Part shown: piece by piece, positions 28,141 to 58,148 of the stretch
Layout: every line of letters begins with the position of its first letter
Position numbering within the stretch: position 1 is the stretch's first letter
Origin: Thalia democratica
Lineage: Eukaryota
Assembly: GCA_965202585.1 (NCBI GenBank)
Contig: OZ241829.1
Span: 31,062,001 to 31,126,000 of the forward strand
Direction: 5' to 3'
Length of the DNA stretch: 64,000 bases
Made by a program: the position numbers and the translations under genes
The notes under the pieces: model-generated
Databases searched by the model: none
The model's input: only the letters and a program-made list of their open reading frames with translations
Told to the model about the DNA's origin: nothing

Positions 28141-28278
28141 CATTAAAATTTATTAGCATTTTTTGGTCATTAAATAAATTATTGTTGTTGTATGTTTCAA
28201 ATGGGTTAAAAACCAAAAGTACTCTAAAAAAAACTAGCTTTAGAGGGCTAGTTAGTATACTTGAAGATCAGTCTAAAC

Positions 28279-31200: not shown

Positions 31201-32336
31201 TGTGCAAAACAAATAAAATTTAGCTTTTTGATACATAATACTTTGAAATACGCTTTCAATTTGGTTTTCAGTTCACAATAGCACTTCCTAGATCACAATA
31301 ATAGTAAATCTATATTACAATTTTTCTCGGGTTTTTTAATTTTCTTATATGCTAGCTTTTTAAATTATGCAGCCCGCAAGTACACAAGTCGACACTAGAA
31401 AGAATTTTTTAGTAAAAACAACTTGCTAACTACAAAAATTGTCCACAACTAACCTAAAGGTTTCAATAGTTTCAAAACAATTCATATTTAAACAGAATCG
31501 ATTATAGATTACAAAAGGCTTTTTAATGTTTAAGTTTTTTAATACACTTTACTGGGCTTATAAGAAAGTAACTGTAAACTATTTTTTCAAGCCCTGAAAT
31601 TACTTTGAACACAGTCCAAAAGTGCGTGCATTAGAAATTCCAGACTAAATTACATTTCTATCGCTAACCGGAGTGTTCTACTTATACAATGTTAGGGGCC
31701 TGGTTTATAACGCAACGTGCGCTTTAACTTGTTTAATAAATGTACCCAAGCTAACGCTTAAAGTGTATTTGATAAGTAAACTAATATAACTTACGTACTA
31801 TTTACTAAAGATTTAATGAATAAGTTACTTATACTAATGTTAAACATAATTCGAGTCTGTGGTAGTGATTATATTTACAATGAAATTGCGAAACTTCAAA
31901 ATGATAAAATACTGTACAACATAAAACTAATAAATCGAATTATAAATTCTTTTAAAAGACTAGAATACATGAATCAAAGAAGCTGAAAACTACGTGTTCG
32001 TTTAAACAAAACTATAAAGCAATATAGAAGCGAACTAAACTCGCTTAAACAAGATTGAAACCATTCACAACTAAGTACAGCGAAAAGCCGCAATGACTTA
32101 AAATTAGCTGCTACGCAGCCAAAACTAAAAGCCAGTTTTAAGCGTAACTTTACTTTAAATACAAGACAGCTCTCTCGAAAAGGAGAAAATGCAAATAGCA
32201 TTACAGTGCGAATACAACTTTTTTGGCTCAAAAGTGCGTACTAAAGAAAAAAAAAAACTTATAAAATCATGGGGGGAATTTTTTTTTCAAAATTCTGAAA
32301 AGGGGGCAATTTATCAAATGAGTTTGGGAAATCCTG
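28279..32336 (+). mobile_element. Decayed hAT (Buster/Charlie-type) transposon, second copy
   Basis: Degenerate TIRs TAGGGTTTTCCAAA / TTTGGGAAATCCTG. Degenerate TSD GTCTAAAC / CTCTAAAG. GGGCGA subterminal repeats. Long AT-rich 3' region colinear with 3251-6544. Confidence 0.88.
28640..29668 (+). pseudogene. Disrupted hAT/Buster-type transposase
   Basis: Fragments KQGLPHTVGEK, VIKAVNVIKRHALQSCLFKKLC..IYTEAKWISKG (matches the HTEVRWLSRG motif), and C-terminal [39 protein letters not shown]. Stops, frameshifts and internal deletions. Confidence 0.85.
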
Positions 32337-32807
32337 CTCTAAAGCAGCGTTACCTAAACTCGATTTCATAAGCGCTCATTTTGAAGAAATTTAAAAAATA
32401 CTAGCCCCCTAAACTAATTATCGACCCTTTGCTAGTTAACCACCCAAATAAGACTTTGGCACTTATAAGTAGTTCGGGTGTCGCTCAAATTAGGAGTAAC
32501 CCTGATTTAAAGAATATTTAAACTGTAAAACAATCGAACATAACAAGTTTCAGATCAAACATCTTAATATGACGTCATAAACAAAATTTATTATACTTTA
32601 ACAAACCAGTAGAATTTATTGCTAATAAATTACGAATAAAGTATGAATTACAAACAAAATAAAGTTGTTGTTCTGGAACTATTTCTTAACTGTTAGTTTA
32701 ATTTATCGATTGCTTTAACACTTTATAACTAAATCTTTTTATGGCGAATGGTATTATAATTTTACACTTTTTTATAGAATCGGTTTAGGTTAATGATTAT
32801 TATAAAA

Positions 32808-32880
32808 CAGGGGTCGGCAAGCAGTTGGAGCTCGCGGGCCAAATTTCAAGTGTTCAAATTCTTCGCGGGCCACAGTTTTA
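32808..32880 (+). mobile_element. Orphan hAT-like terminus
   Basis: CAGGGGTCGGCAA followed by GCGGGCC motifs, typical of Charlie/Buster-type MITE ends. No partner TIR found. Confidence 0.4.
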
Positions 32881-34030
32881 GTTTTAGTGATATTTAAATA
32901 TATTTTGACTTTAGTTTTGGTCACACCAGAGATAGTTTTACTTTTTTTTCACTTAATTACTTTAAGTGACTTTTAGCTACTTATAGAATGCCTATTTAAT
33001 ATATAAATATCTATTAGAATATAATTTACATTGTTTAATATACTTAAGTCTTAATAAAATATGCACTTTCTTAAACACTTAATATTTTGATTAAACACTT
33101 AATTTGATAAAATATTTTTATAATTTTATTTACAACCTAACTCTCTATAAAAACCCGAGCTTGAAAAACATTTATAGGTCACTTTTATATATTTTTTATA
33201 TTTTGAACCACCTTTTCATATTTGAAAAATGTTAACTTTTAAAAATATTTTATGCGTATTAAATAGTTCGCATTCTTTAGAAAATTCATTAATTAGTTAG
33301 TTAAATAAAATTAATACTGTAGATAAGCTAAATAAAATTTTTTTAACATTATTAATGCTGGAATACTTTAATAAAACACGTTATTAGTAATTAATTAGTC
33401 TTTTACACGGTTGCCACTTTAAAAGCAAAAATGTCTGAATTATATTAAAAGTTTACTAAAAGTTGAAACAGCTAAAAATTTTCTGTTAATCAGGCTTAAA
33501 CACATAACTAAAATATAATTATTATTAAAAAGCACAATATGTAAATAGACAAAAAATTACAATTAGTAAACTACACTAAAGTCATAAAAACTATTCTGAG
33601 AATTCGAAGATTTATTCAAAGTGTTTGAAATAAAAGTTTCAAATACACATGAGTTTTATAAAAATTTCTTAAACAGCTTTAACCTAGTCTGAATTAAAAA
33701 AAATAATTTAAAGTAGTCTGTTTGTTTGGCAAACCTGTTTAGAATAAAGTTCAAAAAATAAAGAAATAACGAAGTTTATTAACAGTGAATTAATTATATA
33801 AAAAAAGATTATTGTTCATCTTGAATGGACAATTAAGTTATTATAATTTTTAACAAATGTATAAAAATTTATTAAGCTGTTTATGAACTAGAAAAACTTA
33901 TTTTTTATTAACCATTGTAGCAATTCTTTATGTGCAATAAAAACATTGCATTTATTTTATATATATATATATAAGAATACAATAATAAAGAAGTTTATTG
34001 AGCGACAAAAAGCGCTCAAAATATTTGATC

Positions 34031-34106
34031 CTAGGACATGGTGCACGAAGAACCTTTTGGTTATCAAGTCGCACACCACGAATACCTTTTAACGTCTTGT
34101 CCAGGA
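34031..34106 (-). repeat. About 76-bp structured dispersed repeat, copy 2 (inverted relative to copy 1)
   Basis: Reverse complement reads TCCTGGACAAGACGTTAAAAGGTATTCGTGGTGTGCGACTTGATAACCAAAAGGTTCTTCGTGCACCATGTCCTAG. Confidence 0.85.
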
Positions 34107-34129
34107 ATAATTTAAAAAAAGAGCAAATG

Positions 34130-34720
34130 TGAATTATAAGACGAGCTATTAGAACTATAATACGTTAGTCTGGAGTTATTGTGAGAGACAAAAAAAAAAG
34201 GCTAAAGTCAGTTTAACAACGCTCATGATTATTCTTAGTAATTACAGACTGATCAGAAAAAAACTGTTTAGGGCAAGTTATAAAGTAACGAAGGTAATTA
34301 CTAAAAAAAGATACCGTTTAGAGTTGAAAATTTATTTAAATAACTTGTGTTGGGGAACTTTAACTGTTTGTAGATGTTAAGCTCACTCTGACAAGCATAA
34401 GCAATTAAACACAAAGTAAAAGAAAATGTTATAAAATTTAATATATTAATTTAAATAAAATATCATACAGCTCTTACTGCATGTTTAAGTAGAATAAGGT
34501 TTCGTCTAAGAACAGCTTTGAGGATCTAGACTAGTCTTTTAAAACTATACATTGGTGGGACCAAAAGGAAATGGAGGTGTCACTTTGAAATATTGTTTAG
34601 AATAAATAAACTTTAAACTGATTTTGATGGAGGACTTTTTAAGCTTAAACAAATTGTAAAAAATGCAAAAAACTGTTACGTTTGTATATTCTATTTTTTA
34701 TAAAAGCCCAAATGCATAAG
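34130..34720 (+). pseudogene. Possible highly decayed hAT transposase remnant
   Basis: Short frames such as ASYKVTKVITKK resemble the hAT ASYKVA..IAK motif. Many stops. Confidence 0.3.
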
Positions 34721-36483
34721 TCATTTTATTTACTTATGATAATTTCAATACCGTTTCGCGAGATTTTTACAACTTAAGTACATCTTCGAAAACAGCCTTC
34801 AGTTTGTTTAATATTCAAGGCTATAAAAGTCCTTTTGATAAGTGAAAATTCTACTTTTTTATTAAACTATACTTTTTTAACATAAGTCAGCTGCTAGCAC
34901 AACATTTTTATCAAACAATTGTATTACTTCTAAAAGGAACGGTATATACGAGCGACGTTTACAAGACAATTCAAATTCAGAGAACTAAAATTCCGACAAT
35001 TCAAATTCTTAAAAGTTTTTTTTTTCTTTTTCGAAAAATCTTATACATTTTAAAATATTTTGAAATTACTAAAAAACAAAGAATTTAGAAAAATAAAACA
35101 GAAACAGTTAACAGTTGCTATAAAAACAGTTTGAATAGTTAGATTTCATTACGTTTCATTATTTTCTTATTGTTATGACTAAAGTTTAACTATTTTTTAT
35201 AAAATATAAGTTGGTATTTACTTGGATGTAACTTTTCTAAACAGTGGTTATTATCTTTACTCTTTGCTAGAAAGTAATAAAAGTATAAGTGTAAGGAAAA
35301 AAGTTGTGCATTCTTCCTTTTAAATTAAAAGTTTGTTTACATTTAAAGCTCTTTGAAACTGTATGAAAAGAATGCGTTAAAAAATGACTGTAAAAAATGT
35401 CAAATTTTTAAATTTTAGCTCTAAAGCATATTTTTTTTAATTTAGATACAAAATTAACAAAAAAAAGCGTAACTTTAAAGATAAGTTTTATTAGTTGGTT
35501 GTTTTAAATCCGGCTTGAACCAAATAATTTTAAAGCAAAGAACCTTTACTTAAGCTTTTTGACACCAAAGAGATATCTAAATTGTACATGCACACTGGTC
35601 AGATATGTTATTTATTTTCACATTAAGAAACAAACATAACAACTGTTTAGTATACCCACTAAAACTGAGAGGGGTGCAATATGTAATGTTTTTAAGTAAA
35701 AGTCTTTCTGTTGGTATAAAAACACTAACTTCACTTACTAATACCTGAACTCATAAAAAACGTCGAGTGTTAATTTTTTTGAAAGTTGGCTATAGATAGG
35801 TAATAAAACGTAACATTAAAACCAAATATTTATTACACGGGCTGTTGCATGAAAATTTTCTTTTCAATGCATGATTTTATCGAGCTTTTGTACTGCATGA
35901 TCAAATATACTTTTTCCCTACTATTTTTACTAATTGTTTACGTTTTTAAAAAAGTTTAACCAATTGACCTAATTGTTTAATCACTTCAATTGTTTTGATG
36001 TATTAATGCAATAAAGTTTCTAAAAATTAATTTTAAAATTATACGTTTTTTTTATATGTTGTAAACAAATGTTTATGAGACGACTAAAATAATTATTTAT
36101 ACCTTATTGAATGTTTAGTGTTATCTGTTGAAAAGACAAAGTTTTAAAATAAACATTTAGCTTAAGCTTTAAATGAAAAACTAAAAGCACTAAACGTTTT
36201 TTATCTAGTTAAAAAGTTTTTGTTTTATAACATGAATTTTTTGATACTGTGATTCAGAAACAGGTTTAAAAAGTTTTAAAATAATTTTTAAATAAAGTAA
36301 AAAAAATTATTAGTCTAGTATTTTTATTTTGTATGACTGTTATATTTCTCTGAAGATTATAATATGATATGAAAAATAAAACACCTTAATAAACATTTAT
36401 TAAAAAAAACTTGAAATGTTACACCAAAAATAGTTTTTTAATTTCTAATAACAATGATAACATCTTATTTATAAACAATAAAG

Positions 36484-39400
36484 CGAAAATGGAGAATTTG
36501 AACTGAACACAAAAGTACCTGACACAATAACTTCTTGGGAGATAAGTGCATTCGCTGTTTCACAAAATGGTGGTCTTGGAGTAGCTGACATATCTAAAGT
36601 TTGTGTACTAGAATATCTTAACTACTTTAGTTAACTGTGAACAAAAAGTGAATAAGTAGTTAATGTAAGTGTATAAAGTGTTAAACATTTAAAACAGCTA
36701 AAAGAACACTTTAAATTTTTAATCAAAATACAGAAAACATTAATCAAATCAATGAGCATCGTTAAAAATTTAAGGTTACAGTATTTCGAAATTTCTTTGT
36801 CAACTTGAACATGCCACTGAAAGTAATCAGAGGTGAGATTATCATCGTGCAAGCAGTCGTCTTCAACTATTTCAAACGAGACTTGACAGTAAGAACACTT
36901 TTGTAAAAAAAAAAGATATCTTTTATTTTTGGTTTATAATAAACTTCTAAAGTTTTGCATTAATATAAAACTATAAAAATACTTTAAATAATTTTACAGA
37001 AAAATAAATCAAAGCATTTAAAAAGTATAAAAAACATTATGTACAAAACATATACCGCACAACTATAATTATTTTATCTTATTATTAATTTTTCCTAGGC
37101 TTCATTGAAACTAGTCGAAAGCGACGACTTCAAACTGGAAATGCCAGTGGACGATCTGGACGTTGCCGGTCCAGACCGCAGGATCACCATTCCCGCCGAC
37201 AGCTCCATTTCCGTTTCCTTCCCAATCAGAATGACGACCATCGGTGACGTGGACATAAAAGTGGTGGCGCTGTCCAACCGTGCTTACGATTCACTCATCA
37301 GAACTGTGCACGTCAACGTTAGATTTGTATATCTTATAATTTGTAAAACTTTATATCTAGTTTCATTTAAAACACATAGTTTAAAAATAGTCAGCAGCAA
37401 TTAATTATAATGCTTTTAATTTTGTTTTTTGACAGGACACTATATACTTATAATTTAATAAACTGTGTATACAGCTTGGCTCAAGTAAAAATATGCTTTC
37501 TAGTAACAACACCTTAACACTAACAGCCTGAAGGAATTGAACAGTGCTTTTCGGAGTCAGTTCTTTTTACGAATGAAGAAGGTGAAACACTTTCGGACGC
37601 ATTCGAGATAATTTACCCTGAAAACGTTGTGCCAGGATCCGAAAGAGCGTCTCTGTTCATTTACGGTATGATTCGTTAAATACAGTTTTTCCACTAATTT
37701 TTATACAAATTATTTTAGTTAATAACAAAAATTAAACATATTTTATTTTTTAAACATTTTAATTAATTTGTAAAAACTGCTGAGTGTCTTAAAGTCTAAA
37801 AAATAACAGATAACCTTTTAAGAAATAGACCGATGAAACTTTTTAATTAAACGTGTTTTATTTTTGTTATAGTCATTTTAAAATAATGCTTATCAAAACA
37901 ACTAATGCAGGTGATGTGATGGGAAGCACCGTGAACAATTTGGGCGATTTGTTGAAAGAACCGACCGGGTGTGGAGAGCAGAACATGGTTTCTTTCGCAC
38001 CTGATGTTTTCATCACCTTGTACTTGGAGAAAACGAACTTTTTGACCAAAGTGCTCAAAGACAAAGCGTACAAACACTTTTTAAAAGGGTTTCAAAATCA
38101 ACTCAAGTAAGTACTGTATGGATAATTAATTACCAAAAACAAATAGATACTAACACAACTATCTGACTTTTTCAATGTACATATGTTAACATTAAAATCT
38201 GTTTTATACTGAAAAATCATATGCAGCACTATTTTTGAAATACAGATACTGTTCAATAAACCAACTTAAGAAATTTTATAGAAAACATTTATGGTTTAAA
38301 ATAATATCTATTAAGATAGCCTATGACTTGTACATTTGCATAGCAGTTTAAACAAGACTTTTAAAAACATTAGTTAATTTTTTTATGTAGCTTTTTTAGT
38401 TTCAATAGTTTCAATTAAATATAATTTTTATTCAAATTTCCTTAGTTTTATAACAAAAGAAAAAGAAATTTTTTTAAATGTTAGATATAGTATTATACGA
38501 ATTTAACTTGGTTCACAACATTATAGAAAGCACTACTGCTAATTTAAATGATTTATTCCTAAAAACTACAAAAGTATGTAGAAATGAATTTTTCTTTTAA
38601 AGAAACTTTTATAGGTTCTAGTCCTCAAACTGCTGCTTGAACACCTATATTGAATTAATTACACTTGACTGCCTACTTACTAGAGTTTTGTGAGTAGAAA
38701 AAGTTTACTAAGTTCTTCAACATTGCATTTTATTTAACTGCGTGCGAAATTATTTTAATATATCAACTCTTTACCTTGTGTTTTATCTGTCTAAGTAGAC
38801 ATTTAAATATTAAACTAAACTTATCTCCGTTTAAGTATATACTAGAAGTCTAAAACTAAAGCAATTTTTTTATTAGTATGTATCTAATTCTTTTTTAACA
38901 ATGCACTAAATATTTTTTTAAAGTGTTCTATTTTCAAGCTAGACCAAATTTAACTTTACTTTAACTTAACTACCTGTTTTTATAAAAAACTATAAAACCT
39001 TGAAGCTTCATACACTTTCTCAAAGCTCTAACAAACGTTTTAAACAAAGGTTTTTGAAACATTTGAAAAAACTATAATGTTTTTGTTCACAGCTTCTAGA
39101 TAATACTTTAAATTTTTTTTTCATAAAAAACTGTTTAAGTTTTTTATTTTTTCAAGTGTTGAATTTAGAACTTTTATAAAATTGTTATTATCGAATAATT
39201 AGAAGTTATTTTAAATTTTTATCTTAGACTAATTTATAGTTAACATAAAATTTTTGAGTGAAAGACTAATTACTTTTGTACGGGAAATAGTTATTTTCTC
39301 TTACAATTTTATCTTCTATAGTTCCAGGCTTTTTTAGCCTGTTCGTTATTCTAAGCTTTAAAAACTCATAAAATCTGCTCAAAATTTAATAAACTGTTTT

Positions 39401-42400
39401 CAAACTTCCGCAGCTACCAGCGCAATGACGGATCGTTCAGCGCTTTCGGCAAAAGAGACGATCACGGGTCGCTGTGGCTGACCACTTTCGTAACGAAGGT
39501 CTTCTCGCACGCCCGGGGCCTGGACGCTGGGATCGAAGATCAAATTCAACAGCACGTGGACAGGGCTCGTAGTTACATTCTACGTCAGTATCAAGACGGA
39601 AAGTTTGTCGAAGAGGGCAAACTGTGGAACAAAAATTTGCAGGTAGGTTTTGTACTATAATAAGTTTCCATAAATCGTAGTTGTTTGGTTTAAAGTTTGT
39701 AATGTTATTGCCTTCTGCAAAGCTTAATAATGGTTATCTATTAGATTTAGATTTTTTTAAACAAGATACCGGCAGATCTGGATCTAAGCAGAAAAATGGT
39801 CGGATCCAGTCGGATTTTAATCTTAGATCTGATGGATCACTATTTAGAATTTTTGCACATTACACTAAACCATGATTAAATACACAGAGTTCTTTTTGCA
39901 TTAAAAAAACGAGATACTAATAATTTTGTTACAGAAGTATTAATTATTGAACTTTATAAACTAATTACACTCATTTTATATAGCTTTAAAATCAAACTAT
40001 GTACAAAAAACACTTTCAAACATTCTAAAAACATCTTAAGTGTAACAACAAATTTGATCAGTAATAATTTTTTTAAATAAATACATAGTTATAGATCAGA
40101 ATAAATTGGTGTACATTATACAATAAATAAAACAAAACTGATCTGTATGAAACAAAACAATTCTTGGTATAACTAGATAAATGTCGTAGTTCAATCTTTT
40201 GTAATAGTTTAGTAACAGTGATGAATGGAAATTAGAAAATCTAGTAGCGTTTCTTTTATAATTAAAATATGACACTTTTAAATTTTGTTATACTTTGTAA
40301 AATAATGCAAAAAGCACTTTTGGTCAGAGATAAGCATCTTTTTCAGTCAGCGGGCTTAATTTTTTTTGAAATAAAAATTAAAAATAAATTAATATTAATA
40401 AAATCATATTTCATGGGTTAAACTTGTTACTGACCCTAATATACCTGGTGTATGTTTTAAACCTTGAACAAGTATTTTTTTTCTTAAATGCGTTCTTGTG
40501 GTTCAAGTTAAAAAAATGGCTGTAGTTCTTTTTAATTGGGATTCGACCGGATCCGGTTCCAATAAAAAACGGCCGAATTTAGCCTGATTCGGATCCGGTA
40601 GTTATTATAATAAATGGTTTTTACAGAAATAACAAGTCATTAGCTTAATTTATCAATACAGTATTTACCATTTTACAATAGTTGTTTAAGATGTTATTAA
40701 GTAAAGCTATTATGTTATATTTGCTCTATGTTATGTTTAATATTATTTAAAAAAGTAGTATGATATTTTTCAGGGTGGAGTTAACAGCGATTTGACAATG
40801 TCAGCTTATGTAGCGATTGCTTTTCTAGAAAGTTGGCCTGAGGTAAAGTTTGTTAAACAAAAACACAAATAATAATAATAAATGTTGATCTAATTTATTT
40901 TTAGCACCATAATCTAAGTTTAAATAGTTTAATATATAAATAACATTATATCGAAACATTTTAATCAATATTATTTTTGTAACAAATAAATTTTTACGAG
41001 TTTTACTTTAAAAACAGCCGTACGCTACATACTTTTTTTCTTTTTTTATGATCTTTTCGCAGTAATAATAGTTTTTATGATTTATATTTTTTAAAATTTA
41101 GATTAATAAACAGGACGAACCAAAAGATTTAAAGATATTTTCTAAGATAAGAACTAAACTGGAAAGAAACTTAGTTTCAGTTAGCGACAAACCCTATGAG
41201 CTTTCAATTTTGACTTACGCACTGCATTTGTTAGAAAGCGACTATATTGACGACGCTTTTGCAATGTTGGAAGCCATTAAAGTTAACGAAGGTACTTTCA
41301 CTTCATATTTTTATTCAATTATGAATTAAGTTTTCGACTAAAACTAAAACTACAATTATACAAGGTGCGAACACTTACTGGGGCGAAAAAGACTCATCGT
41401 CTACAAAATACAAGGAGTCTTACAGATCTCACTACCACAAAGAGTCCAGCAAAAACGTGGAAACTACGTCATACGCGCTGCTGACGTACGTGTATCGCGG
41501 ATTGAAAGTTGAAGCGCTGCCCATTTTGAAGTGGCTCGCGTCCAAGAGGAACGCTTTTGGAGGTTACAGCAACACCCAGGTAACTAAGTTACAATTTTCA
41601 CGAATAAAATTAGAAAGAATAAACTTTTTTACGCTTACAATGAATATAATAAATAATTTTAAACATTTGACACGAAAAACAACAGAGTTTATCCATTAAG
41701 GATTTAAGGATTTATGCAGACTAGTTTTCTTTATAAATTCTATATTATCCAAACTGATGACAGATAACGGAGCTGCAAAACTTTCGATAAAATAAGTTTT
41801 GCATAGGTTTTAATTAAACTACAAGTATTGTTAGTATTATAGTCGAGCTTTTTATGAATAGTCCTGGACAAGACTTTAGATGGTATCCAAGTGGTTTACG
41901 ACTCAATAGTCAAAAGGTTTTTCGTTTACCATGTCCTACGACCAAATATTTTGAGCAATTTTTTTCATCTTTAAATAAAAAATATACAGTGCACAAAATA
42001 ACTTTTATTTTAGGACACAGTGATTGCAATTCAAGCGATGTCGGCCTTTGCAAGTGAAATATCATTCGGCGAACAAAATCTGAACGTTATGTTTACACAA
42101 GGAACATCTAACCGAAATATCAACCTCAACAAAAACAACTTCCAAGTTCTATCTCAATTTGATGTTAGTGACCTCAATTAGTTTGTTGAACTATAATGTT
42201 CAAAAATATTTTCTATGATAGAAAAAAAAGAAAAACTATATGATGGTGATAAAAGCATAAATACTACAAAAATTGTATTATGTTATTTATATAAAAAAAG
42301 CAAAAAAAAATTATGCGGGAGTTATTTTCAGTGTTGGAGTTTTTCTTTCATTTTAAAGAAAGCGACCAAAAGTAAATAAAAACAAATTATTTTAAAAGCT

Positions 42401-45400
42401 TGAAGCTGACACGGGTTACGTGATGGTGGAAGCAAGCGGTTCTGGTATGGGCGTGGCACAACTGTCTATCTGCTACAACCAAGTAGAATCCCCTTATGAG
42501 CAATCTCCTTTCCAATGTGACTTGAACAATTACGACCACAGCTTAGACCATGCCAGATTGGACCTTTGTTGCAGGTAGGCCATGTTAATTGTTATATTTT
42601 AGAATAAATTAATTAAATTGTAAAGAATTTTAAAAAGTTAAGCTTTAATTTTTTTTAAGTCGCACTTGATTTTCATATTAATGATTGTGGTTAGAAAAAT
42701 ATACTAATGCAGACAAGTATTATATGAGAAGTTGAGACATGAGTTGTATCTTTAGAAATTTATAAATAACTTTTTATTTTTAATAATTTAATTACTGTTA
42801 ATGTTTAAACTAATTTCATGTTTTTTAAATTGTCCTTTTTTTAAATAAATATTTATTTTAATTCAAACCATGTAAACAAACAGTCTGAGCAACTCGTCAG
42901 ACGAAGCAACTGGAATGCTGTTGTACAAATACCAGCTTCCGAGCGGCTTCAGTTACAAACCACTTGGTGAGTTTGAAGCGATGGTTATACAGATACCGGT
43001 TTGGGATGATAGCATGAAATTTCTCAGCATAGGCGGCGCAGAACCAAAGAAAATTGAAATGCAAAAAGACACTCTTAATGTTTATTTCGATGAGGTTTAT
43101 TTCTTAATATTATATTATGTACTTATTATTTTAAATTTTGTGTCTGCTTTAAAATTCATTGTTTGTTTTTTTTCTAAAACTTTAGTCCAACTCAAGTTTT
43201 AGAATCATTTTTTTCAGTTGAGTGGTGAAGACAAAGTATGCAACCATATTCGATTAGAGAGAACTCAGAAGGTAGCATCGACACAGCCTGGATCTATAAC
43301 AGTGATGGACTATTATAAACCAAGTAATAAAGTGATAGCATTAATAGACTTACTTTCTTTAAAATAAACTAAAAATCAAGCAAAAATATATTTAACAGTT
43401 TTTATCAAGTTTTGACACAAACATGTTGAGTCCAATAACACAGAGTTTTTTCAATACACAGAGTTAAATGTTTTAAGAAAAACTAGTGGCTTGTTTAGCT
43501 AAATAAAAAAAAGATATATATCTTGCTTACGGAAAGAACTAAAATTAATTAAGTATTTGTTGGTTTTTTTTACATTATTTTTACATGGTTTGCAACTAAA
43601 AACTTACTTTATCTTGAAATATTTGCAAAATATTTAAAAAAACTAAATTTTCAACATTAGTTACAAAAGAAAACACTGCTAGAGAAAATGTTTTATTAAC
43701 AGAAAGGTCGTTCGTGATGCCCTACTCCTTACGAGCTCTGGAAACTTCAGATATTTGCCAAGTTTGTCCTGAATGTGGAGGTTGCGCAGGTAACAAATAA
43801 GACCAAATTATTTAAAAAAGTAAATAAGCTGCTTCTAATCATAAATGGTGCATTGACTACTTCAAACTCAAGTTTAAACAATTAATGTGTTTGTGTAAGC
43901 TGTTTTTAAAACAAATGCATGTTATAAGGCACATGTTATAGCATATTCTAACAAATTTTTAGTAATATTAGTATACAGTGTTTAAAATTTATACAAACAT
44001 ATACTTAAAGTTTAAAATAGTAAAACTTTATTTGTAGTTTTCACTTTGTATTCTAAATAAAACTTCCGTATAGCATACAAAAAAGCACCTGGATCACTGG
44101 ACTACTGTCCTCTATTTTGCAAAAATGATATTGACGATCGGGTTGCTGACAGTTGCCAAGGAAAGTTCTTCTCCAGTTGTCCGGGTAAGTTAAACATCAA
44201 TACCTCAGATCACCACAAACTATACTAAATTTCCTTACATTGCTATACATAACTAGCTTTAATGTTTTAATCTAGTTACTTATGTTTGAAATTTTAAGAC
44301 ATGGATGACACAATGTGGGACGCGCTCGGTCCTGAACACCAGCGTGGCAGGGCTTTGGGCGAAGAATGCCACCTTGTGGACGGTCCCGAAAATCGCGTCT
44401 ACAGCGAGAAATTCCCAGGTATATTAGCTGTATTGAGTTTAGGTTTTAATAAAATTTATGGAACAAATCAAAATTTAAAAAAAGGTTAATTTTTTTTTTC
44501 TATTTTATCTTATATTTAATAACGTTTTACAAAAAAATGTCAAATAAAAAACTAAAATTTAAACTTGTTTATTCTAATTAATCACAGCCATGAACCTCGA
44601 CTTGAAAGAAGAAAAGCCATATTTGAACTGCAGTCGATTAGCGTTCGAACTTGAAAACGTTCCACAATTTTCATTTTCTTTTATTGTCAAGATGAACTCG
44701 TTTGGAAAGAAAACAACAAAAGTTTTTAACTATGGTAATAATGACCACAAAAGTTACAGGTCCACATTTTACATGTACCACACTTCCAGGTATGTTCTGC
44801 GGTTGAAACTACTTTATGAGTCTTACAAAATTTATTTTGTATTAAAAAGTAATCGAGTCTCGACTGTAAAACGTTTTGCAATTTTTTTAGGCCGCGGTCA
44901 GGTTTCAGATTATACATGCATAGGAACGGAAGAAGACATGGAGTTTTGAGAATCAAACCTTCGTTAGTTTATGTTGACCAAAAAAAACATTTAATAAACT
45001 TTAGTACGTCTTTCTGCAATCAAAATTTTTCTACTGAGTATTTATAGACAGTAGGAACTTTTAACTTACAACTACTTTTTTATATTAATCTGATTAAAAA
45101 AGCTTCAAATTTTATAAATCTATCAACTCATAGTGTAGGTAAAAAAAGATAAAGACTTGTGACCTGCTAGTTTTATGATTCTTTTTTTACTTTTTCGATA
45201 TTTTTCTTAAACTATATTTTATTGCATTAAAAATTTTGAACATATCTGATCGCATTTCTGGGAATTTTTAGGCTATTTGATAACAAGTTTGCACACGTTT
45301 TGATCACTTACGATGGCGAGCAAATGAAACTCTACGTGAATGGTCAGTCAACTGGTATCGCATACTCGGATACAAGAGCAGTGAGGTATCCTCGAGACGG

Positions 45401-46082
45401 TCCCAAGCAGTTTTTCTTCGGAAGAAACGCTAGATTTGGTGGAGTCAGAAGTAGACAAAGCAGAAATGGTGACATTTATTAAACATTTTGAATTATTTGT
45501 TTTAAAATTGTTAACTTTTCAAAAATGTAACTATTCGCCATTACTGTAAAGAAAAAGTTTTAGTTTAATTATGACTAGCTTTTTAAATTTCATTAAAAAA
45601 AAAGTTTTACTACTGAACTATTAAAAGTATAAATAGATTCACTCTACACTTCATATGAACTTAAGAAAATTAGTTAAAGTACAAAATAAATAACAAGTAA
45701 TTTTTAATTAAATCAGTTAATTTAAAACTGAACGTTTAAGTAGACTATGAACAACTAAAACTCTTCATAAATTTTATAAGAAATATTGCAATTTGTATAT
45801 ACAGAATTTCCTGGAAGTTTCTCTTCCTTGTTGTTCTGGAAGAAGGCGCTCACTTCCAACGACGTGTCATCAGTTTATGACATCTACAAGGAGGAGCTCA
45901 CTCAGGCGAATCGCGACAAAATGGTCCTTTACAATCCTCAAATGGCGCTTTTCCTGACGTCAGGGCGCAACTTGATGGCAGGTTGTTCACCGTTCCACAG
46001 CCTCCAGAACTTGGACACTTTCGTGAGAGTTAAAAAACTGTACAAGATCGCCGAAACCTGCCCTGCCCCTGTGCCATTTTAA
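36484..46082 (+). CDS. Thioester-containing protein (A2M/CD109/TEP family), 3' half: MG7-CUB-TED-MG8 plus Cys-rich segment and LamG-like domain
   Basis: 21 phase-consistent GT-AG exons: 36484-36598, 36775-36888, 37099-37317, 37527-37665, 37911-38106, 39414-39642, 40774-40842, 41114-41291, 41365-41579, 42014-42163, 42399-42574, 42884-42966, 43033-43094, 43218-43323, 43703-43789, 44074-44184, 44299-44418, 44588-44789, 44891-44962, 45272-45468 (or 45450), 45805-46082. Motifs: VPDTITSWEISAFAVS, NMPLKVIRGE, EPTGCGEQNM (37967-37981), YQRNDGSFSAFG, VETTSYALL, GGYSNTQDT, QLPSGF, VMDYYKP, DICQVCPEC. Confidence 0.93.
39760..40600. repeat. Probable decayed non-autonomous element in a TEP intron
   Basis: Two GC-richer clusters of GGATCC/AGATCT/CCGG palindromic motifs (39765-39838, 40537-40600) bracket AT-rich sequence. 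No TIR or TSD resolved. Confidence 0.3.
41862..41941 (+). repeat. Diverged third copy of the 76-bp repeat in a TEP intron (also in the duplicated and mirrored arms)
   Basis: TCCTGGACAAGACTTTAGATGGTATCCAAGTGGTTTACGAC..CAAAAGGTTTTTCGTTTACCATGTCCTAC, followed by GACCAAATATTTTGAGC, which closely matches copy 2 (GATCAAATATTTTGAGC). Confidence 0.7.
44588..45890 (+). CDS. LamG/concanavalin-A-like (pentraxin-type) domain exons at the TEP C-terminus
   Basis: FSFSFIVK, FAHVLITYDGEQMKLYVNG and FPGSFSSLLFWKKALTSNDVSSVY match the pattern F.....W.HVAVTYDG..LRLYVNG....F.G.I.EVRIW.RALS..EI..LY. Confidence 0.75.
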
Positions 46083-46225
46083 AATGCGTTTTTGAGCAAC
46101 TTAATTACTGTTGTTTTTATTCTATGTGTTTTTTTTACAATGTTTGATATTTAACGTGAAGATTTTATTCATTCTGTTAACTGTATATTTTTCGTTGCTG
46201 TACATATTCTAGTTAAACTTATAGA

Positions 46226-46231
46226 AATAAA
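46226..46231 (+). terminator. Candidate polyadenylation signal of the TEP gene
   Basis: AATAAA about 145 nt after the TAA at 46080-46082. The context is AT-rich, so it could be chance. Confidence 0.45.
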
Positions 46232-46337
46232 GGTTATTATAATTACATCGTTTACTTTACTGCAAGTAATATTTGATGTTTAAAAAAAGTATAAACTTTA
46301 AAAGAAATTTTTAGTAAATTTTTTTAAAAGTGTTGAT

Positions 46338-48823
46338 TTATGAAATAATAATAATAGAATAAATAGCAACTAAGATATTCTTAAAGTAAAGCGTATATAC
46401 GTATATAGTGTCTTTTTGCATTTCAATTTTCTTTGGTTCTGCGCCGCCTATGCTGAGAAATTTCATGCTATCATCCCAAACCGGTATCTGTATAACCATC
46501 GCTTCAAACTCACCAAGTGGTTTGTAACTGAAGCCGCTCGGAAGCTGGTATTTGTACAACAGCATTCCAGTTGCTTCGTCTGACGAGTTGCTCAGACTGT
46601 TTGTTTACATGGTTTGAATTAAAATAAATATTTATTTAAAAAAAGGACAATTTAAAAAACATGAAATTAGTTTAAACATTAACAGTAATTAAATTATTAA
46701 AAATAAAAAGTTATTTATAAATTTCTAAAGATACAACTCATGTCTCAACTTCTCATATAATACTTGTCTGCATTAGTATATTTTTCTAACCACAATCATT
46801 AATATGAAAATCAAGTGCGACTTAAAAAAAATTAAAGCTTAACTTTTTAAAATTCTTTACAATTTAATTAATTTATTCTAAAATATAACAATTAACATGG
46901 CCTACCTGCAACAAAGGTCCAATCTGGCATGGTCTAAGCTGTGGTCGTAATTGTTCAAGTCACATTGGAAAGGAGATTGCTCATAAGGGGATTCTACTTG
47001 GTTGTAGCAGATAGACAGTTGTGCCACGCCCATACCAGAACCGCTTGCTTCCACCATCACGTAACCCGTGTCAGCTTCAAGCTTTTAAAATAATTTGTTT
47101 TTATTTACTTTTGGTCGCTTTCTTTAAAATGAAAGAAAAACTCCAACACTGAAAATAACTCACGCATAATTTTTTTTTGCTTTTTTTATATAAATAACAT
47201 AATACAATTTTTGTAGTATTTATGCTTTTATCACCATCATATAGTTTTTCTTTTTTTTCTATCATAGAAAATATTTTTGAACATTATAGTTCAACAAACT
47301 AATTGAGGTCACTAACATCAAATTGAGATAGAACTTGGAAGTTGTTTTTGTTGAGGTTGATATTTCGGTTAGATGTTCCTTGTGTAAACATAACGTTCAG
47401 ATTTTGTTCGCCGAATGATATTTCACTTGCAAAGGCCGACATCGCTTGAATTGCAATCACTGTGTCCTAAAATAAAAGTTATTTTGTGCACTGTATATTT
47501 TTTATTTAAAGATGAAAAAAATTGCTCAAAATATTTGGTCGTAGGACATGGTAAACGAAAAACCTTTTGACTATTGAGTCGTAAACCACTTGGATACCAT
47601 CTAAAGTCTTGTCCAGGACTATTCATAAAAAGCTCGACTATAATACTAACAATACTTGTAGTTTAATTAAAACCTATGCAAAACTTATTTTATCGAAAGT
47701 TTTGCAGCTCCGTTATCTGTCATCAGTTTGGATAATATAGAATTTATAAAGAAAACTAGTCTGCATAAATCCTTAAATCCTTAATGGATAAACTCTGTTG
47801 TTTTTCGTGTCAAATGTTTAAAATTATTTATTATATTCATTGTAAGCGTAAAAAAGTTTATTCTTTCTAATTTTATTCGTGAAAATTGTAACTTAGTTAC
47901 CTGGGTGTTGCTGTAACCTCCAAAAGCGTTCCTCTTGGACGCGAGCCACTTCAAAATGGGCAGCGCTTCAACTTTCAATCCGCGATACACGTACGTCAGC
48001 AGCGCGTATGACGTAGTTTCCACGTTTTTGCTGGACTCTTTGTGGTAGTGAGATCTGTAAGACTCCTTGTATTTTGTAGACGATGAGTCTTTTTCGCCCC
48101 AGTAAGTGTTCGCACCTTGTATAATTGTAGTTTTAGTTTTAGTCGAAAACTTAATTCATAATTGAATAAAAATATGAAGTGAAAGTACCTTCGTTAACTT
48201 TAATGGCTTCCAACATTGCAAAAGCGTCGTCAATATAGTCGCTTTCTAACAAATGCAGTGCGTAAGTCAAAATTGAAAGCTCATAGGGTTTGTCGCTAAC
48301 TGAAACTAAGTTTCTTTCCAGTTTAGTTCTTATCTTAGAAAATATCTTTAAATCTTTTGGTTCGTCCTGTTTATTAATCTAAATTTTAAAAAATATAAAT
48401 CATAAAAACTATTATTACTGCGAAAAGATCATAAAAAAAGAAAAAAAGTATGTAGCGTACGGCTGTTTTTAAAGTAAAACTCGTAAAAATTTATTTGTTA
48501 CAAAAATAATATTGATTAAAATGTTTCGATATAATGTTATTTATATATTAAACTATTTAAACTTAGATTATGGTGCTAAAAATAAATTAGATCAACATTT
48601 ATTATTATTATTTGTGTTTTTGTTTAACAAACTTTACCTCAGGCCAACTTTCTAGAAAAGCAATCGCTACATAAGCTGACATTGTCAAATCGCTGTTAAC
48701 TCCACCCTGAAAAATATCATACTACTTTTTTAAATAATATTAAACATAACATAGAGCAAATATAACATAATAGCTTTACTTAATAACATCTTAAACAACT
48801 ATTGTAAAATGGTAAATACTGTA
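46338..48823 (-). pseudogene. Inverted partial TEP copy truncated inside MG8, ending at the assembly gap
   Basis: 46407-48823 is the reverse complement of 40657-43073 (coordinate sum 89480). The frame continues past the breakpoint as IYVYTLYFKNILVAIYSIIIIS-stop. Confidence 0.85.
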
Positions 48824-48923
48824 NNNNNNNNNNNNNNNNNNNNNNNNNNNNNNNNNNNNNNNNNNNNNNNNNNNNNNNNNNNNNNNNNNNNNNNNNNNNN
48901 NNNNNNNNNNNNNNNNNNNNNNN
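48824..48923. other. Assembly gap (100 N)
   Basis: Run of exactly 100 N, typical of a scaffolding placeholder. Confidence 0.98.
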
Positions 48924-51900
48924 GAAAGTTTGTCGAAGAGGGCAAACTGTGGAACAAAAATTTGCAGGTAGGTTTTGTACTATAATAAGTTTCCATAAAT
49001 CGTAGTTGTTTGGTTTAAAGTTTGTAATGTTATTGCCTTCTGCAAAGCTTAATAATGGTTATCTATTAGATTTAGATTTTTTTAAACAAGATACCGGCAG
49101 ATCTGGATCTAAGCAGAAAAATGGTCGGATCCAGTCGGATTTTAATCTTAGATCTGATGGATCACTATTTAGAATTTTTGCACATTACACTAAACCATGA
49201 TTAAATACACAGAGTTCTTTTTGCATTAAAAAAACGAGATACTAATAATTTTGTTACAGAAGTATTAATTATTGAACTTTATAAACTAATTACACTCATT
49301 TTATATAGCTTTAAAATCAAACTATGTACAAAAAACACTTTCAAACATTCTAAAAACATCTTAAGTGTAACAACAAATTTGATCAGTAATAATTTTTTTA
49401 AATAAATACATAGTTATAGATCAGAATAAATTGGTGTACATTATACAATAAATAAAACAAAACTGATCTGTATGAAACAAAACAATTCTTGGTATAACTA
49501 GATAAATGTCGTAGTTCAATCTTTTGTAATAGTTTAGTAACAGTGATGAATGGAAATTAGAAAATCTAGTAGCGTTTCTTTTATAATTAAAATATGACAC
49601 TTTTAAATTTTGTTATACTTTGTAAAATAATGCAAAAAGCACTTTTGGTCAGAGATAAGCATCTTTTTCAGTCAGCGGGCTTAATTTTTTTTGAAATAAA
49701 AATTAAAAATAAATTAATATTAATAAAATCATATTTCATGGGTTAAACTTGTTACTGACCCTAATATACCTGGTGTATGTTTTAAACCTTGAACAAGTAT
49801 TTTTTTTCTTAAATGCGTTCTTGTGGTTCAAGTTAAAAAAATGGCTGTAGTTCTTTTTAATTGGGATTCGACCGGATCCGGTTCCAATAAAAAACGGCCG
49901 AATTTAGCCTGATTCGGATCCGGTAGTTATTATAATAAATGGTTTTTACAGAAATAACAAGTCATTAGCTTAATTTATCAATACAGTATTTACCATTTTA
50001 CAATAGTTGTTTAAGATGTTATTAAGTAAAGCTATTATGTTATATTTGCTCTATGTTATGTTTAATATTATTTAAAAAAGTAGTATGATATTTTTCAGGG
50101 TGGAGTTAACAGCGATTTGACAATGTCAGCTTATGTAGCGATTGCTTTTCTAGAAAGTTGGCCTGAGGTAAAGTTTGTTAAACAAAAACACAAATAATAA
50201 TAATAAATGTTGATCTAATTTATTTTTAGCACCATAATCTAAGTTTAAATAGTTTAATATATAAATAACATTATATCGAAACATTTTAATCAATATTATT
50301 TTTGTAACAAATAAATTTTTACGAGTTTTACTTTAAAAACAGCCGTACGCTACATACTTTTTTTCTTTTTTTATGATCTTTTCGCAGTAATAATAGTTTT
50401 TATGATTTATATTTTTTAAAATTTAGATTAATAAACAGGACGAACCAAAAGATTTAAAGATATTTTCTAAGATAAGAACTAAACTGGAAAGAAACTTAGT
50501 TTCAGTTAGCGACAAACCCTATGAGCTTTCAATTTTGACTTACGCACTGCATTTGTTAGAAAGCGACTATATTGACGACGCTTTTGCAATGTTGGAAGCC
50601 ATTAAAGTTAACGAAGGTACTTTCACTTCATATTTTTATTCAATTATGAATTAAGTTTTCGACTAAAACTAAAACTACAATTATACAAGGTGCGAACACT
50701 TACTGGGGCGAAAAAGACTCATCGTCTACAAAATACAAGGAGTCTTACAGATCTCACTACCACAAAGAGTCCAGCAAAAACGTGGAAACTACGTCATACG
50801 CGCTGCTGACGTACGTGTATCGCGGATTGAAAGTTGAAGCGCTGCCCATTTTGAAGTGGCTCGCGTCCAAGAGGAACGCTTTTGGAGGTTACAGCAACAC
50901 CCAGGTAACTAAGTTACAATTTTCACGAATAAAATTAGAAAGAATAAACTTTTTTACGCTTACAATGAATATAATAAATAATTTTAAACATTTGACACGA
51001 AAAACAACAGAGTTTATCCATTAAGGATTTAAGGATTTATGCAGACTAGTTTTCTTTATAAATTCTATATTATCCAAACTGATGACAGATAACGGAGCTG
51101 CAAAACTTTCGATAAAATAAGTTTTGCATAGGTTTTAATTAAACTACAAGTATTGTTAGTATTATAGTCGAGCTTTTTATGAATAGTCCTGGACAAGACT
51201 TTAGATGGTATCCAAGTGGTTTACGACTCAATAGTCAAAAGGTTTTTCGTTTACCATGTCCTACGACCAAATATTTTGAGCAATTTTTTTCATCTTTAAA
51301 TAAAAAATATACAGTGCACAAAATAACTTTTATTTTAGGACACAGTGATTGCAATTCAAGCGATGTCGGCCTTTGCAAGTGAAATATCATTCGGCGAACA
51401 AAATCTGAACGTTATGTTTACACAAGGAACATCTAACCGAAATATCAACCTCAACAAAAACAACTTCCAAGTTCTATCTCAATTTGATGTTAGTGACCTC
51501 AATTAGTTTGTTGAACTATAATGTTCAAAAATATTTTCTATGATAGAAAAAAAAGAAAAACTATATGATGGTGATAAAAGCATAAATACTACAAAAATTG
51601 TATTATGTTATTTATATAAAAAAAGCAAAAAAAAATTATGCGGGAGTTATTTTCAGTGTTGGAGTTTTTCTTTCATTTTAAAGAAAGCGACCAAAAGTAA
51701 ATAAAAACAAATTATTTTAAAAGCTTGAAGCTGACACGGGTTACGTGATGGTGGAAGCAAGCGGTTCTGGTATGGGCGTGGCACAACTGTCTATCTGCTA
51801 CAACCAAGTAGAATCCCCTTATGAGCAATCTCCTTTCCAATGTGACTTGAACAATTACGACCACAGCTTAGACCATGCCAGATTGGACCTTTGTTGCAGG

Positions 51901-54900
51901 TAGGCCATGTTAATTGTTATATTTTAGAATAAATTAATTAAATTGTAAAGAATTTTAAAAAGTTAAGCTTTAATTTTTTTTAAGTCGCACTTGATTTTCA
52001 TATTAATGATTGTGGTTAGAAAAATATACTAATGCAGACAAGTATTATATGAGAAGTTGAGACATGAGTTGTATCTTTAGAAATTTATAAATAACTTTTT
52101 ATTTTTAATAATTTAATTACTGTTAATGTTTAAACTAATTTCATGTTTTTTAAATTGTCCTTTTTTTAAATAAATATTTATTTTAATTCAAACCATGTAA
52201 ACAAACAGTCTGAGCAACTCGTCAGACGAAGCAACTGGAATGCTGTTGTACAAATACCAGCTTCCGAGCGGCTTCAGTTACAAACCACTTGGTGAGTTTG
52301 AAGCGATGGTTATACAGATACCGGTTTGGGATGATAGCATGAAATTTCTCAGCATAGGCGGCGCAGAACCAAAGAAAATTGAAATGCAAAAAGACACTCT
52401 TAATGTTTATTTCGATGAGGTTTATTTCTTAATATTATATTATGTACTTATTATTTTAAATTTTGTGTCTGCTTTAAAATTCATTGTTTGTTTTTTTTCT
52501 AAAACTTTAGTCCAACTCAAGTTTTAGAATCATTTTTTTCAGTTGAGTGGTGAAGACAAAGTATGCAACCATATTCGATTAGAGAGAACTCAGAAGGTAG
52601 CATCGACACAGCCTGGATCTATAACAGTGATGGACTATTATAAACCAAGTAATAAAGTGATAGCATTAATAGACTTACTTTCTTTAAAATAAACTAAAAA
52701 TCAAGCAAAAATATATTTAACAGTTTTTATCAAGTTTTGACACAAACATGTTGAGTCCAATAACACAGAGTTTTTTCAATACACAGAGTTAAATGTTTTA
52801 AGAAAAACTAGTGGCTTGTTTAGCTAAATAAAAAAAAGATATATATCTTGCTTACGGAAAGAACTAAAATTAATTAAGTATTTGTTGGTTTTTTTTACAT
52901 TATTTTTACATGGTTTGCAACTAAAAACTTACTTTATCTTGAAATATTTGCAAAATATTTAAAAAAACTAAATTTTCAACATTAGTTACAAAAGAAAACA
53001 CTGCTAGAGAAAATGTTTTATTAACAGAAAGGTCGTTCGTGATGCCCTACTCCTTACGAGCTCTGGAAACTTCAGATATTTGCCAAGTTTGTCCTGAATG
53101 TGGAGGTTGCGCAGGTAACAAATAAGACCAAATTATTTAAAAAAGTAAATAAGCTGCTTCTAATCATAAATGGTGCATTGACTACTTCAAACTCAAGTTT
53201 AAACAATTAATGTGTTTGTGTAAGCTGTTTTTAAAACAAATGCATGTTATAAGGCACATGTTATAGCATATTCTAACAAATTTTTAGTAATATTAGTATA
53301 CAGTGTTTAAAATTTATACAAACATATACTTAAAGTTTAAAATAGTAAAACTTTATTTGTAGTTTTCACTTTGTATTCTAAATAAAACTTCCGTATAGCA
53401 TACAAAAAAGCACCTGGATCACTGGACTACTGTCCTCTATTTTGCAAAAATGATATTGACGATCGGGTTGCTGACAGTTGCCAAGGAAAGTTCTTCTCCA
53501 GTTGTCCGGGTAAGTTAAACATCAATACCTCAGATCACCACAAACTATACTAAATTTCCTTACATTGCTATACATAACTAGCTTTAATGTTTTAATCTAG
53601 TTACTTATGTTTGAAATTTTAAGACATGGATGACACAATGTGGGACGCGCTCGGTCCTGAACACCAGCGTGGCAGGGCTTTGGGCGAAGAATGCCACCTT
53701 GTGGACGGTCCCGAAAATCGCGTCTACAGCGAGAAATTCCCAGGTATATTAGCTGTATTGAGTTTAGGTTTTAATAAAATTTATGGAACAAATCAAAATT
53801 TAAAAAAAGGTTAATTTTTTTTTTCTATTTTATCTTATATTTAATAACGTTTTACAAAAAAATGTCAAATAAAAAACTAAAATTTAAACTTGTTTATTCT
53901 AATTAATCACAGCCATGAACCTCGACTTGAAAGAAGAAAAGCCATATTTGAACTGCAGTCGATTAGCGTTCGAACTTGAAAACGTTCCACAATTTTCATT
54001 TTCTTTTATTGTCAAGATGAACTCGTTTGGAAAGAAAACAACAAAAGTTTTTAACTATGGTAATAATGACCACAAAAGTTACAGGTCCACATTTTACATG
54101 TACCACACTTCCAGGTATGTTCTGCGGTTGAAACTACTTTATGAGTCTTACAAAATTTATTTTGTATTAAAAAGTAATCGAGTCTCGACTGTAAAACGTT
54201 TTGCAATTTTTTTAGGCCGCGGTCAGGTTTCAGATTATACATGCATAGGAACGGAAGAAGACATGGAGTTTTGAGAATCAAACCTTCGTTAGTTTATGTT
54301 GACCAAAAAAAACATTTAATAAACTTTAGTACGTCTTTCTGCAATCAAAATTTTTCTACTGAGTATTTATAGACAGTAGGAACTTTTAACTTACAACTAC
54401 TTTTTTATATTAATCTGATTAAAAAAGCTTCAAATTTTATAAATCTATCAACTCATAGTGTAGGTAAAAAAAGATAAAGACTTGTGACCTGCTAGTTTTA
54501 TGATTCTTTTTTTACTTTTTCGATATTTTTCTTAAACTATATTTTATTGCATTAAAAATTTTGAACATATCTGATCGCATTTCTGGGAATTTTTAGGCTA
54601 TTTGATAACAAGTTTGCACACGTTTTGATCACTTACGATGGCGAGCAAATGAAACTCTACGTGAATGGTCAGTCAACTGGTATCGCATACTCGGATACAA
54701 GAGCAGTGAGGTATCCTCGAGACGGTCCCAAGCAGTTTTTCTTCGGAAGAAACGCTAGATTTGGTGGAGTCAGAAGTAGACAAAGCAGAAATGGTGACAT
54801 TTATTAAACATTTTGAATTATTTGTTTTAAAATTGTTAACTTTTCAAAAATGTAACTATTCGCCATTACTGTAAAGAAAAAGTTTTAGTTTAATTATGAC

Positions 54901-57900: not shown

Positions 57901-58148
57901 CTAAAAATAAATTAGATCAACATTTATTATTATTATTTGTGTTTTTGTTTAACAAACTTTACCTCAGGCCAACTTTCTAGAAAAGCAATCGCTACATAAG
58001 CTGACATTGTCAAATCGCTGTTAACTCCACCCTGAAAAATATCATACTACTTTTTTAAATAATATTAAACATAACATAGAGCAAATATAACATAATAGCT
58101 TTACTTAATAACATCTTAAACAACTATTGTAAAATGGTAAATACTGTA
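48924..58148 (+). repeat. Apparently identical direct repeat of 39599-48823 (offset 9325), including a second copy of the TEP 3' exons (stop at 55407)
   Basis: All ORF-track entries recur at +9325 with identical translations. Even the arm-specific SNP states are reproduced. Both copies abut the gap. Confidence 0.93.

Follow-up and report, generated by a model that had tools for sequence, protein, structure and literature searches.

The thioester proteins (TEPs) closest to the gene described here are CD109 and the insect-type TEPs (iTEPs), such as Anopheles TEP1, Drosophila Tep2 and Biomphalaria BgTEP2. CD109 is built from the same body of macroglobulin (MG), TED and MG8 domains, with the same GCGEQ motif, and it carries a glycosylphosphatidylinositol (GPI) signal and a His at the position that defines thioester reactivity. 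TEP1 relies on the separate partners LRIM1/APL1C. The iTEPs have tandem bait-region exons and a shared cysteine stretch at the C-terminus (PMC7016707), stop a few residues past this stretch, and have no accessory C-terminal domain. This report addresses a TEP locus of Thalia democratica, in which the gene continues beyond that point. The window, meaning the whole stretch of 64,000 nucleotides analysed (assembly GCA_965202585.1, contig OZ241829.1, positions 31,062,001 to 31,126,000 of the forward strand), is AT-rich eukaryotic DNA of about 30% G+C with short GT-AG introns. It contains 3' TEP exons that share the iTEP cysteine stretch, have an Asn in place of the His of CD109, and run on, through exons at 43703-46082 (plus strand), into a tail of 326 extra residues with a predicted LamG_3 domain and no hydrophobic end.

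Other TEPs also bear modules added to the common scaffold. The complement proteins C3, C4 and C5 have an extra globular domain after MG8, attached through a disulfide-containing anchor segment, and the position of the LamG tail is analogous. However, their extra domain is C345C/NTR, they possess an anaphylatoxin domain as well, and neither NTR (C345C) nor ANATO gave a Pfam match in the tail exons or in three tail-bearing protein fragments of relatives (P0007, P0009 and P0010). Their sequence similarity is also lower (1e-9 to 1e-15). CPAMD8, with a Kazal domain, and MCR, with an LDLa domain and a transmembrane helix, likewise show that added modules are tolerated by the TEP scaffold, and the LamG tail is a further instance of such domain accretion; the type of domain and its placement differ. 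A published list of TEP accessory features comprises C345C, LDLa, GPI anchors, transmembrane helices and the iTEP cysteine stretch (PMC7016707).

Splicing of the tail onto the thioester gene

The exon bounds were read from the window DNA at 43000-46600 and from its translation. The spliced tail consists of seven GT-AG exons on the plus strand, all in phase. The frame leaves the last MG8 exon (43218-43323) as ...GSITVMDYYKP KRSFVMPYSLRALETSDICQVCPECGGCA, followed by the 326 residues. The first tail exon (43703-43789) holds the iTEP-type cysteine signature DICQVCPECGGC, up to which the spliced frame reads ...DYYKPKRSFVMPYSLRALETSDICQVCPECGGCA, and has RNA joints on both sides. Two exons (44074-44184 and 44299-44418) encode a cysteine-rich linker of about 77 amino acids with 5 Cys, three (44588-44789, 44891-44962 and 45272-45468) encode most of the Laminin_G_3 domain, and the last (45805-46082) supplies the final LamG strands (FPGSFSSLLFW), an extension of about 70 amino acids and the stop, as read from the translation and an RNA contig. 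The peptides HVLITYDGEQMKLYVNG and FPGSFSSLLFWKKALTSNDV lie within the 326 residues. Altogether, 355 residues follow DYYKP, with 12 cysteines and one N-x-S site, and the protein ends ...KIAETCPAPVPF, ETCPAPVPF-stop, without a hydrophobic stretch. An original prediction, made from the letters of the window, had counted six further in-phase exons of about 330 amino acids after the cysteine signature and no hydrophobic anchor; both readings were correct.

The RNA evidence comes from two metatranscriptome runs of different marine studies (X1 and X4), each with one contig spanning the tail (1280 and 1130 nt, respectively). Both contigs contain the GT..AG joints 43323>43703, 43789>44074, 44184>44299, 44418>44588, 44789>44891 and 44962>45272, and consecutive RNA contig pieces also give the joint 45467/8>45804/5. 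The joint 43789>44074 had been named in advance as decisive for the fusion. The X1 contig extends through the 3' untranslated region (46083-46226, plus strand) to 46226, and the X4 contig ends at 46075. Other RNA contigs cover the upstream exons at 42012-42163, 42399-42571 and 42881-43094.

The same boundary is crossed in other organisms. Ocean transcript assemblies yielded three predicted protein fragments, P0007, P0009 and P0010, from relatives whose tails are about 70% identical. In P0010 (421 aa), one open reading frame (ORF) that runs to the stop joins A2M_recep (1.2e-10) and Laminin_G_3 (9.7e-13, 49 bits). The ORF of P0009 (480 aa) holds TED (9e-26) and A2M_recep (3e-13) and continues through the linker into the first part of LamG, and P0007 (311 aa) holds A2M_recep and Laminin_G_3. 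By tblastn, P0009 and P0010 align colinearly, exon by exon and through both linker exons, to 41186-46076. Because of the RNA joints and these single ORFs, the tail belongs to the transcript of the thioester gene.

One could instead suppose two genes, with a small separate LamG gene lying 3' of an ordinary TEP and the joined contigs being read-through or chimeric assemblies. Tail exons 3 and 4 do start near in-frame ATGs (MDDTMW... and MNLDL...), and a relative's transcript contig, L012, holds an unspliced intron 5' of the first LamG exon. However, canonical GT..AG joints lead in two studies from MG8 through the cysteine exon and the linker into LamG, the intron phases all match, three independent ORFs of relatives span the boundary, and no stop interrupts the TEP frame ahead of the donor at 43789. 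A separate LamG protein would furthermore be without a signal peptide, despite the 12 cysteines of the tail. We regard two genes as very improbable.

Two observations concern the introns themselves. The intron after 43789 starts gtaacaaataa (43790-43801), as it does in the paralogue described below (gene B), and a message left unspliced at 43789 would finish ...CGGCAGNK-stop, three codons on, at about the normal iTEP length. This stop may be the trace of an ancestral stop bypassed by splicing; stops are common in AT-rich introns. In L012, exons 4-7 are spliced, while L012:1-314 is AT-rich, stop-filled and ends ...tttacag before the first LamG exon. This 5' sequence represents pre-mRNA or an intron that was retained; an internal start is a further possibility.

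Identity and conservation of the tail domain

On its own, exon 6 (65 aa) matches Pfam Laminin_G_3 (PF13385) with 30.5 bits (E 4.8e-7), above the gathering cut-off of 27.6. The L012 ORF reaches 51.6 bits (1.5e-13), and the longer ORFs of relatives cover positions 16-149 of the 151 in the model. The Pfam cut-off is exceeded in exon 6 of the window, L012, P0006, P0007, P0008 and P0010. In the PDB, the sequence matches of the tail are 4qvs, a bacterial S-layer LamG-like domain (1e-4), and, weakly, pappalysin-2. The look-alikes found with a language model fall into Laminin_G_3 and pentraxin clusters. Domains of similar type occur in PAPP-A/pappalysin (LG), the S-layer protein 4qvs, the lectin-like part of sialidases and the pentraxins, but in none of them is the domain attached to a thioester protein.

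The domain had been predicted as "LamG/pentraxin-like", and only the first half of this label holds. Four tail proteins gave no match to Pfam Pentaxin (PF00354) with E values of up to 1 allowed, pentraxins appear only among the language-model look-alikes, and membership of the pentraxins was rejected. Since Laminin_G_3 matches and the Pentaxin model does not, the sequence comparisons support a LamG_3/ConA-like domain rather than a pentraxin proper. For the linker, no Pfam family was matched when the tail exons and the proteins of relatives were scanned. The C-terminal extension is conserved, at about 70% identity to P0001, P0002 and P0006 in the last exon, and matched no known family.

The tail is under purifying selection. 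The ratio of non-synonymous to synonymous substitution (dN/dS) between the window and L012 is 0.23 at dS 0.94; taken separately, the LamG part gives 0.20 and the extension 0.30. Between paralogues A and B, described below, the ratio is 0.20.

The thioester body and its clade

Upstream of the tail, the plus strand of the window encodes the 3' part of a thioester body. A2M-domain exons lie in two open stretches at 36482-36903 (PDTITSWEISAF...; Pfam A2M PF00207, E 1.9e-10 and 1.1e-10). The thioester motif GCGEQ stands at 37967-37981, in the first TED exon, where the stretch 37847-38107 matches TED_complement (PF07678, 4.3e-17). A further TED exon, ending ...EEGKLWNKNLQ, lies at 39414-39642 (2.7e-14 to the same model), and late TED exons at 41186-41585 (1.3e-13, and tblastn of P0009). 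The transition from TED to MG8 (42012-42163) and a first MG8 exon (42399-42571) are covered by RNA contig pieces, from X1 and X4 in the case of the former, and by tblastn of P0009. The next MG8 exon (42881-43095), with RNA to 43078 and 43094, contains the boundary 43073/43074 (...KKIEMQKDT/LNVYFDE), native to the gene, at which an exact repeat described below stops. The last MG8 exon, introduced above, scores 30.1 bits for A2M_recep (PF07677) at 43209-43337.

Among solved structures, the best relatives of P0009 are human CD109 (5.8e-33, TED to MG8) and Anopheles TEP1 (6.5e-26); the matches to A2ML1, C4, A2M (2e-12), C5 and C3 (about 1e-9) are weaker. The window thus has GCGEQ within a TED, an A2M domain and an MG8/receptor-binding domain, as does the superfamily at large, and shares with the iTEP/CD109 clade its closest relatives and the cysteine stretch after MG8. 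By these sequence features the body is a thioester protein of the CD109/insect-TEP clade. The alignments of both CD109 and TEP1 end at the DICQVC... exon; therefore, 43703-43789 corresponds to the normal C-terminus of the family, and everything from 44074 onward is extra.

In phmmer alignments, the first Asn of WNKN (LWN) stands opposite the His of CD109 (VIH) and the Asn of A2M (LLN), which is the reactivity-defining position. In C3, C4A/C4B and A2M, His catalyses the attack of hydroxyls on the thioester, whereas Asn or Asp leave a direct reaction with amines. An Asn at this site therefore argues against a C3-style tagging of glycan hydroxyls.

An intact paralogue, gene B

When the window was extended by 80 kb (coordinates hereafter called the extended scale) and compared with itself by BLAST, an intact paralogue was found about 69 kb downstream of the tail. 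This gene B lies outside the window on the plus strand, at about 86.8-115.0 kb of the extended scale, head-to-head with a minus-strand TEP gene, gene A, whose full TEP body runs from the window to about 80.3 kb. Body and tail are contiguous in gene B, about 94% and 96% identical, respectively, to gene A and the window tail, and its tail ORF is intact, with the same tail architecture. Its N-terminal exon encodes MLVKNKLLLSAAFLIGVLVVSTTA..., which looks signal-peptide-like by eye. Pfam finds MG3 (7.6e-6) and A2M_BRD (4.6e-12) above the cut-off, and MG2 (1e-6) at 29.4 bits, below the cut-off of 32.8.

In both paralogues, bait-region exons are duplicated in tandem to four or five copies, which have divergent N-terminal parts and a common end, ...EPRKEFPETWLWLN.ETK. 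Those of gene B lie at 96386-102508 of the extended scale (L007, C5:31156001-31166000), and those of gene A at 64930-71039 on the minus strand (L004); a further copy at 98504-98590 looks degenerate. BgTEP2 has 12 mutually exclusive exons (PMC7016707), and by analogy with it and with Drosophila Tep2, the tandem copies are candidate mutually exclusive exons.

Of the 20 letter differences listed for the RNA contigs, 14 agree with gene B. Thus, the demonstrated expression is of a B-like gene. Gene B is most likely the working gene; gene A may be one as well, should the tail segment truly lie in the other orientation.

Structure of the locus

At the coordinates of the tail, the assembly is complex. 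The 3' TEP body on the plus strand, which extends from the intron that follows the bait-region exons to a point midway through an MG8 exon (34356-43073), is one arm, X(+), of an inverted repeat whose other arm occupies 55732-64449. The arms are 8,718 nt long and 99.94% identical; the portion that falls within the window has 5 mismatches. The segment that follows X(+), T (43074-46406, plus strand; 3,333 bases), stands between the arms and encodes the tail together with the last part of MG8. On the left, T has a native junction within an exon, at ...KDT/LNVYFDE, while its right junction, J2, is non-native by comparison with gene B and the arm, and carries a 16-nt filler, GCGTATATACGTATAT, at 46391-46406. 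From 46407 to 48823, on the minus strand, the inverted arm begins, reading ...KKIEMQKDT/IYVYTLYFKNIL...stop, a TEP truncated within MG8. An assembly gap of 100 N follows (48824-48923). The next stretch, 48924-58148 (plus strand), abuts the gap and is an exact direct copy of 39599-48823 (9,225 of 9,225 bases). It is probably an unmerged contig overlap, hence an artefact, so the second whole copy of the tail at 53028-55407, which also appears in the search of the own genome, is probably not real; parts of both arms are duplicated along with it. Finally, arm X(-) at 55732-64000 is the 3' part of gene A, which, as assembled, is cut off within MG8.

On the plus strand, no signal peptide, MG1-MG6 or start exons were found in 24344-36400, and the left flank, 24344-34355, has no TEP homology; 5' of arm X(+) there are only a hAT-like remnant, short repeats and an LRP-like gene on the opposite strand. 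As assembled, therefore, the tail at these coordinates sits on a 3' fragment without a promoter or signal peptide. The prediction of a secreted protein is not supported for the window copy, which is incomplete as assembled; the signal peptide and the MG1-MG6 part were found only in gene B, about 69 kb away, and in the opposite-strand copy.

These facts could mean that the tail at 43703-46082 is a dead or mis-assembled copy, produced by assembly errors or by a recent rearrangement that split gene A, and that gene B alone makes the TEP-LamG protein. The exact duplicate abutting the gap, the near identity of the arms while A and B differ by about 5%, the missing 5' half of one copy and the MG8 truncation of the other, and the RNA letters that follow gene B at the 14 listed sites all fit such a history. 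On the other side, the tail ORF of the window is fully intact, with A-B differences that are 9 synonymous and 7 non-synonymous, the filler at J2 is typical of a real rearrangement, and both contigs flanking the gap show the tail segment in the same orientation. In addition, if the 8.7-kb arms recombine, the resulting isomer would have a complete gene A with its tail restored. We take a dead or mis-assembled window copy to be a serious prospect, if somewhat short of even. It is unlikely that the 3.3-kb tail segment flips between the inverted repeats as a switch that turns the tail on or off gene A.

A fold-back chimeric read was considered as a simple artefactual cause of the inverted repeat and rejected, given the one tail segment between the arms, the 5 arm differences and the 16-nt filler. 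DNA contig depths in run X7 (about 199 for the arm versus about 116-159 for the tail) fit a 3:2 ratio of copies, but depth is not copy number and was not relied upon. Between the heads of A and B lies a segment of about 3.2 kb (79691-82842, extended scale) that recurs inverted, at 86% identity, just 3' of the gene B tail (116071-119215), so a single palindrome does not account for the whole duplication history here. Automatic gene calls at this locus would yield duplicated and truncated TEP models, and annotation should be read with this in mind.

Weighing the gene as a whole

Taken as a whole, the reading that we consider likely is of a lineage-specific protein of the CD109/insect-TEP clade that is spliced on into a linker, a Laminin_G_3 domain and an extension, with gene B as its intact form. 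Several points weigh against it. The copy in the window has no 5' exons, as described above. The RNA contigs break near 43078-43094, and none of them connects the signal peptide with the tail. In L012, the intron preceding the first LamG exon is still present, and there are thus unspliced or alternative forms. The AlphaFold2 model of the tail, built on a shallow 8-row alignment of close relatives, has a mean predicted local distance difference test (pLDDT) score of 43.6; at this low confidence, it places strands in the first 125 residues and helix in the last approximately 70. The role given to the Asn derives from the textbook chemistry of C3, C4 and A2M, and not from this protein itself.

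Proposed mechanism and function

If this reading is right, the protein would be secreted, and cleavage of its bait region, variable through alternative exons, would expose the thioester. With Asn instead of His, the thioester would react directly with amino groups, by analogy with A2M and C4A. The LamG domain would hang off MG8, where C3 has its C345C and CD109 its GPI signal, and would most plausibly serve there as a binding handle.

The leading candidate for what this handle binds, at close to an even chance, is a host-side ligand, such as a cell surface, the matrix or a clearance receptor, with LamG acting as a tether that replaces the GPI anchor. Three grounds favour a host-side handle over a microbial sensor: the chemistry of Asn, the roles that LamG domains usually have in animals, and the membrane tethering of the closest clade. 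A microbial glycan is a less probable ligand, and the remaining chance belongs to another ligand or none.

The original prediction had seen a recognition module coupled to a covalent thioester tag, with sensor and opsonin in one chain. On this mechanism, the LamG domain would be a lectin for microbial surfaces, and no separate recognition partners would be needed. Several features are in keeping with this. The relatives of Laminin_G_3 include the lectin-like domains of sialidases and trans-sialidases, pentraxin clusters are found among the look-alikes, the tail is conserved under selection, and TEPs of this clade act in invertebrate immunity (PMC7016707). However, Pfam Pentaxin does not match, Asn favours amines over the hydroxyls of sugars, host receptors and matrix are the more frequent ligands of animal LamG domains, and the tandem variable bait exons already supply the usual iTEP route to diversity. 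We therefore hold a microbial lectin to be unlikely as the mechanism. The fullest version, in which the domain would be a self-contained recognition lectin within a one-chain, recognise-and-tag protein, diversified by its bait exons and acting without a separate partner, appears more doubtful still.

Distribution and precedent

In a search of its own genome, the tail occurs only at this locus. Other A2M_recep loci, at C8:65.02 Mb, C5:60.12 Mb, C5:64.67-64.89 Mb and C1:71.83 Mb, are without it. The C5 TEP cluster contains at least four A2M_recep loci, and some have stops inside the matches.

Large protein collections contributed a handful of ocean-sample transcript fragments with the tail. A piece of exon 7 compared with 1.84 billion protein representatives returned two fragments at 72% identity and no full-length protein; the weak matches P0003-P0005 are repeat proteins and were discarded. 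A scan of Joint Genome Institute (JGI) metagenome contigs with the tail alignment A2 gave 286 pattern matches, none of them confirmed. In the literature, no TEP, CD109 or A2M with a LamG domain was found, only incidental co-mentions. Neither the literature nor the protein collections offered a described TEP with such a tail. Provisionally, then, the TEP-LamG architecture is without a described precedent; it is provisional because the length filters excluded full-length proteins and the search lay outside the domain-architecture databases.

Neighbouring features

An LRP-like gene with many exons of the YWTD/LDL-receptor class B type and EGF-like type (95-24343, minus strand) adjoins the TEP locus. 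In vertebrates, LRP1 is the receptor for activated A2M. The adjacency of the two at this locus may be chance. Open stretches resembling the C-terminal dimerisation region of a hAT-type transposase lie at 28083-29665 and 3904-4062 (plus strand), and a sequence at 4564-6414 has a copy of about 80% identity at 29818-31654.

Significance for thioester proteins

Thioester proteins are among the oldest immune effectors of animals, and their functional classes are largely set by what the common scaffold bears: C345C in complement, a GPI anchor in CD109, LDLa in MCR and Kazal in CPAMD8. With a LamG-type binding domain in that position, a member that is both conserved and expressed extends these classes by one. 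It offers a concrete, testable case of how targeting can be built into the effector itself, and it comes from organisms that are known to date only from ocean metatranscriptomes and a single new genome.

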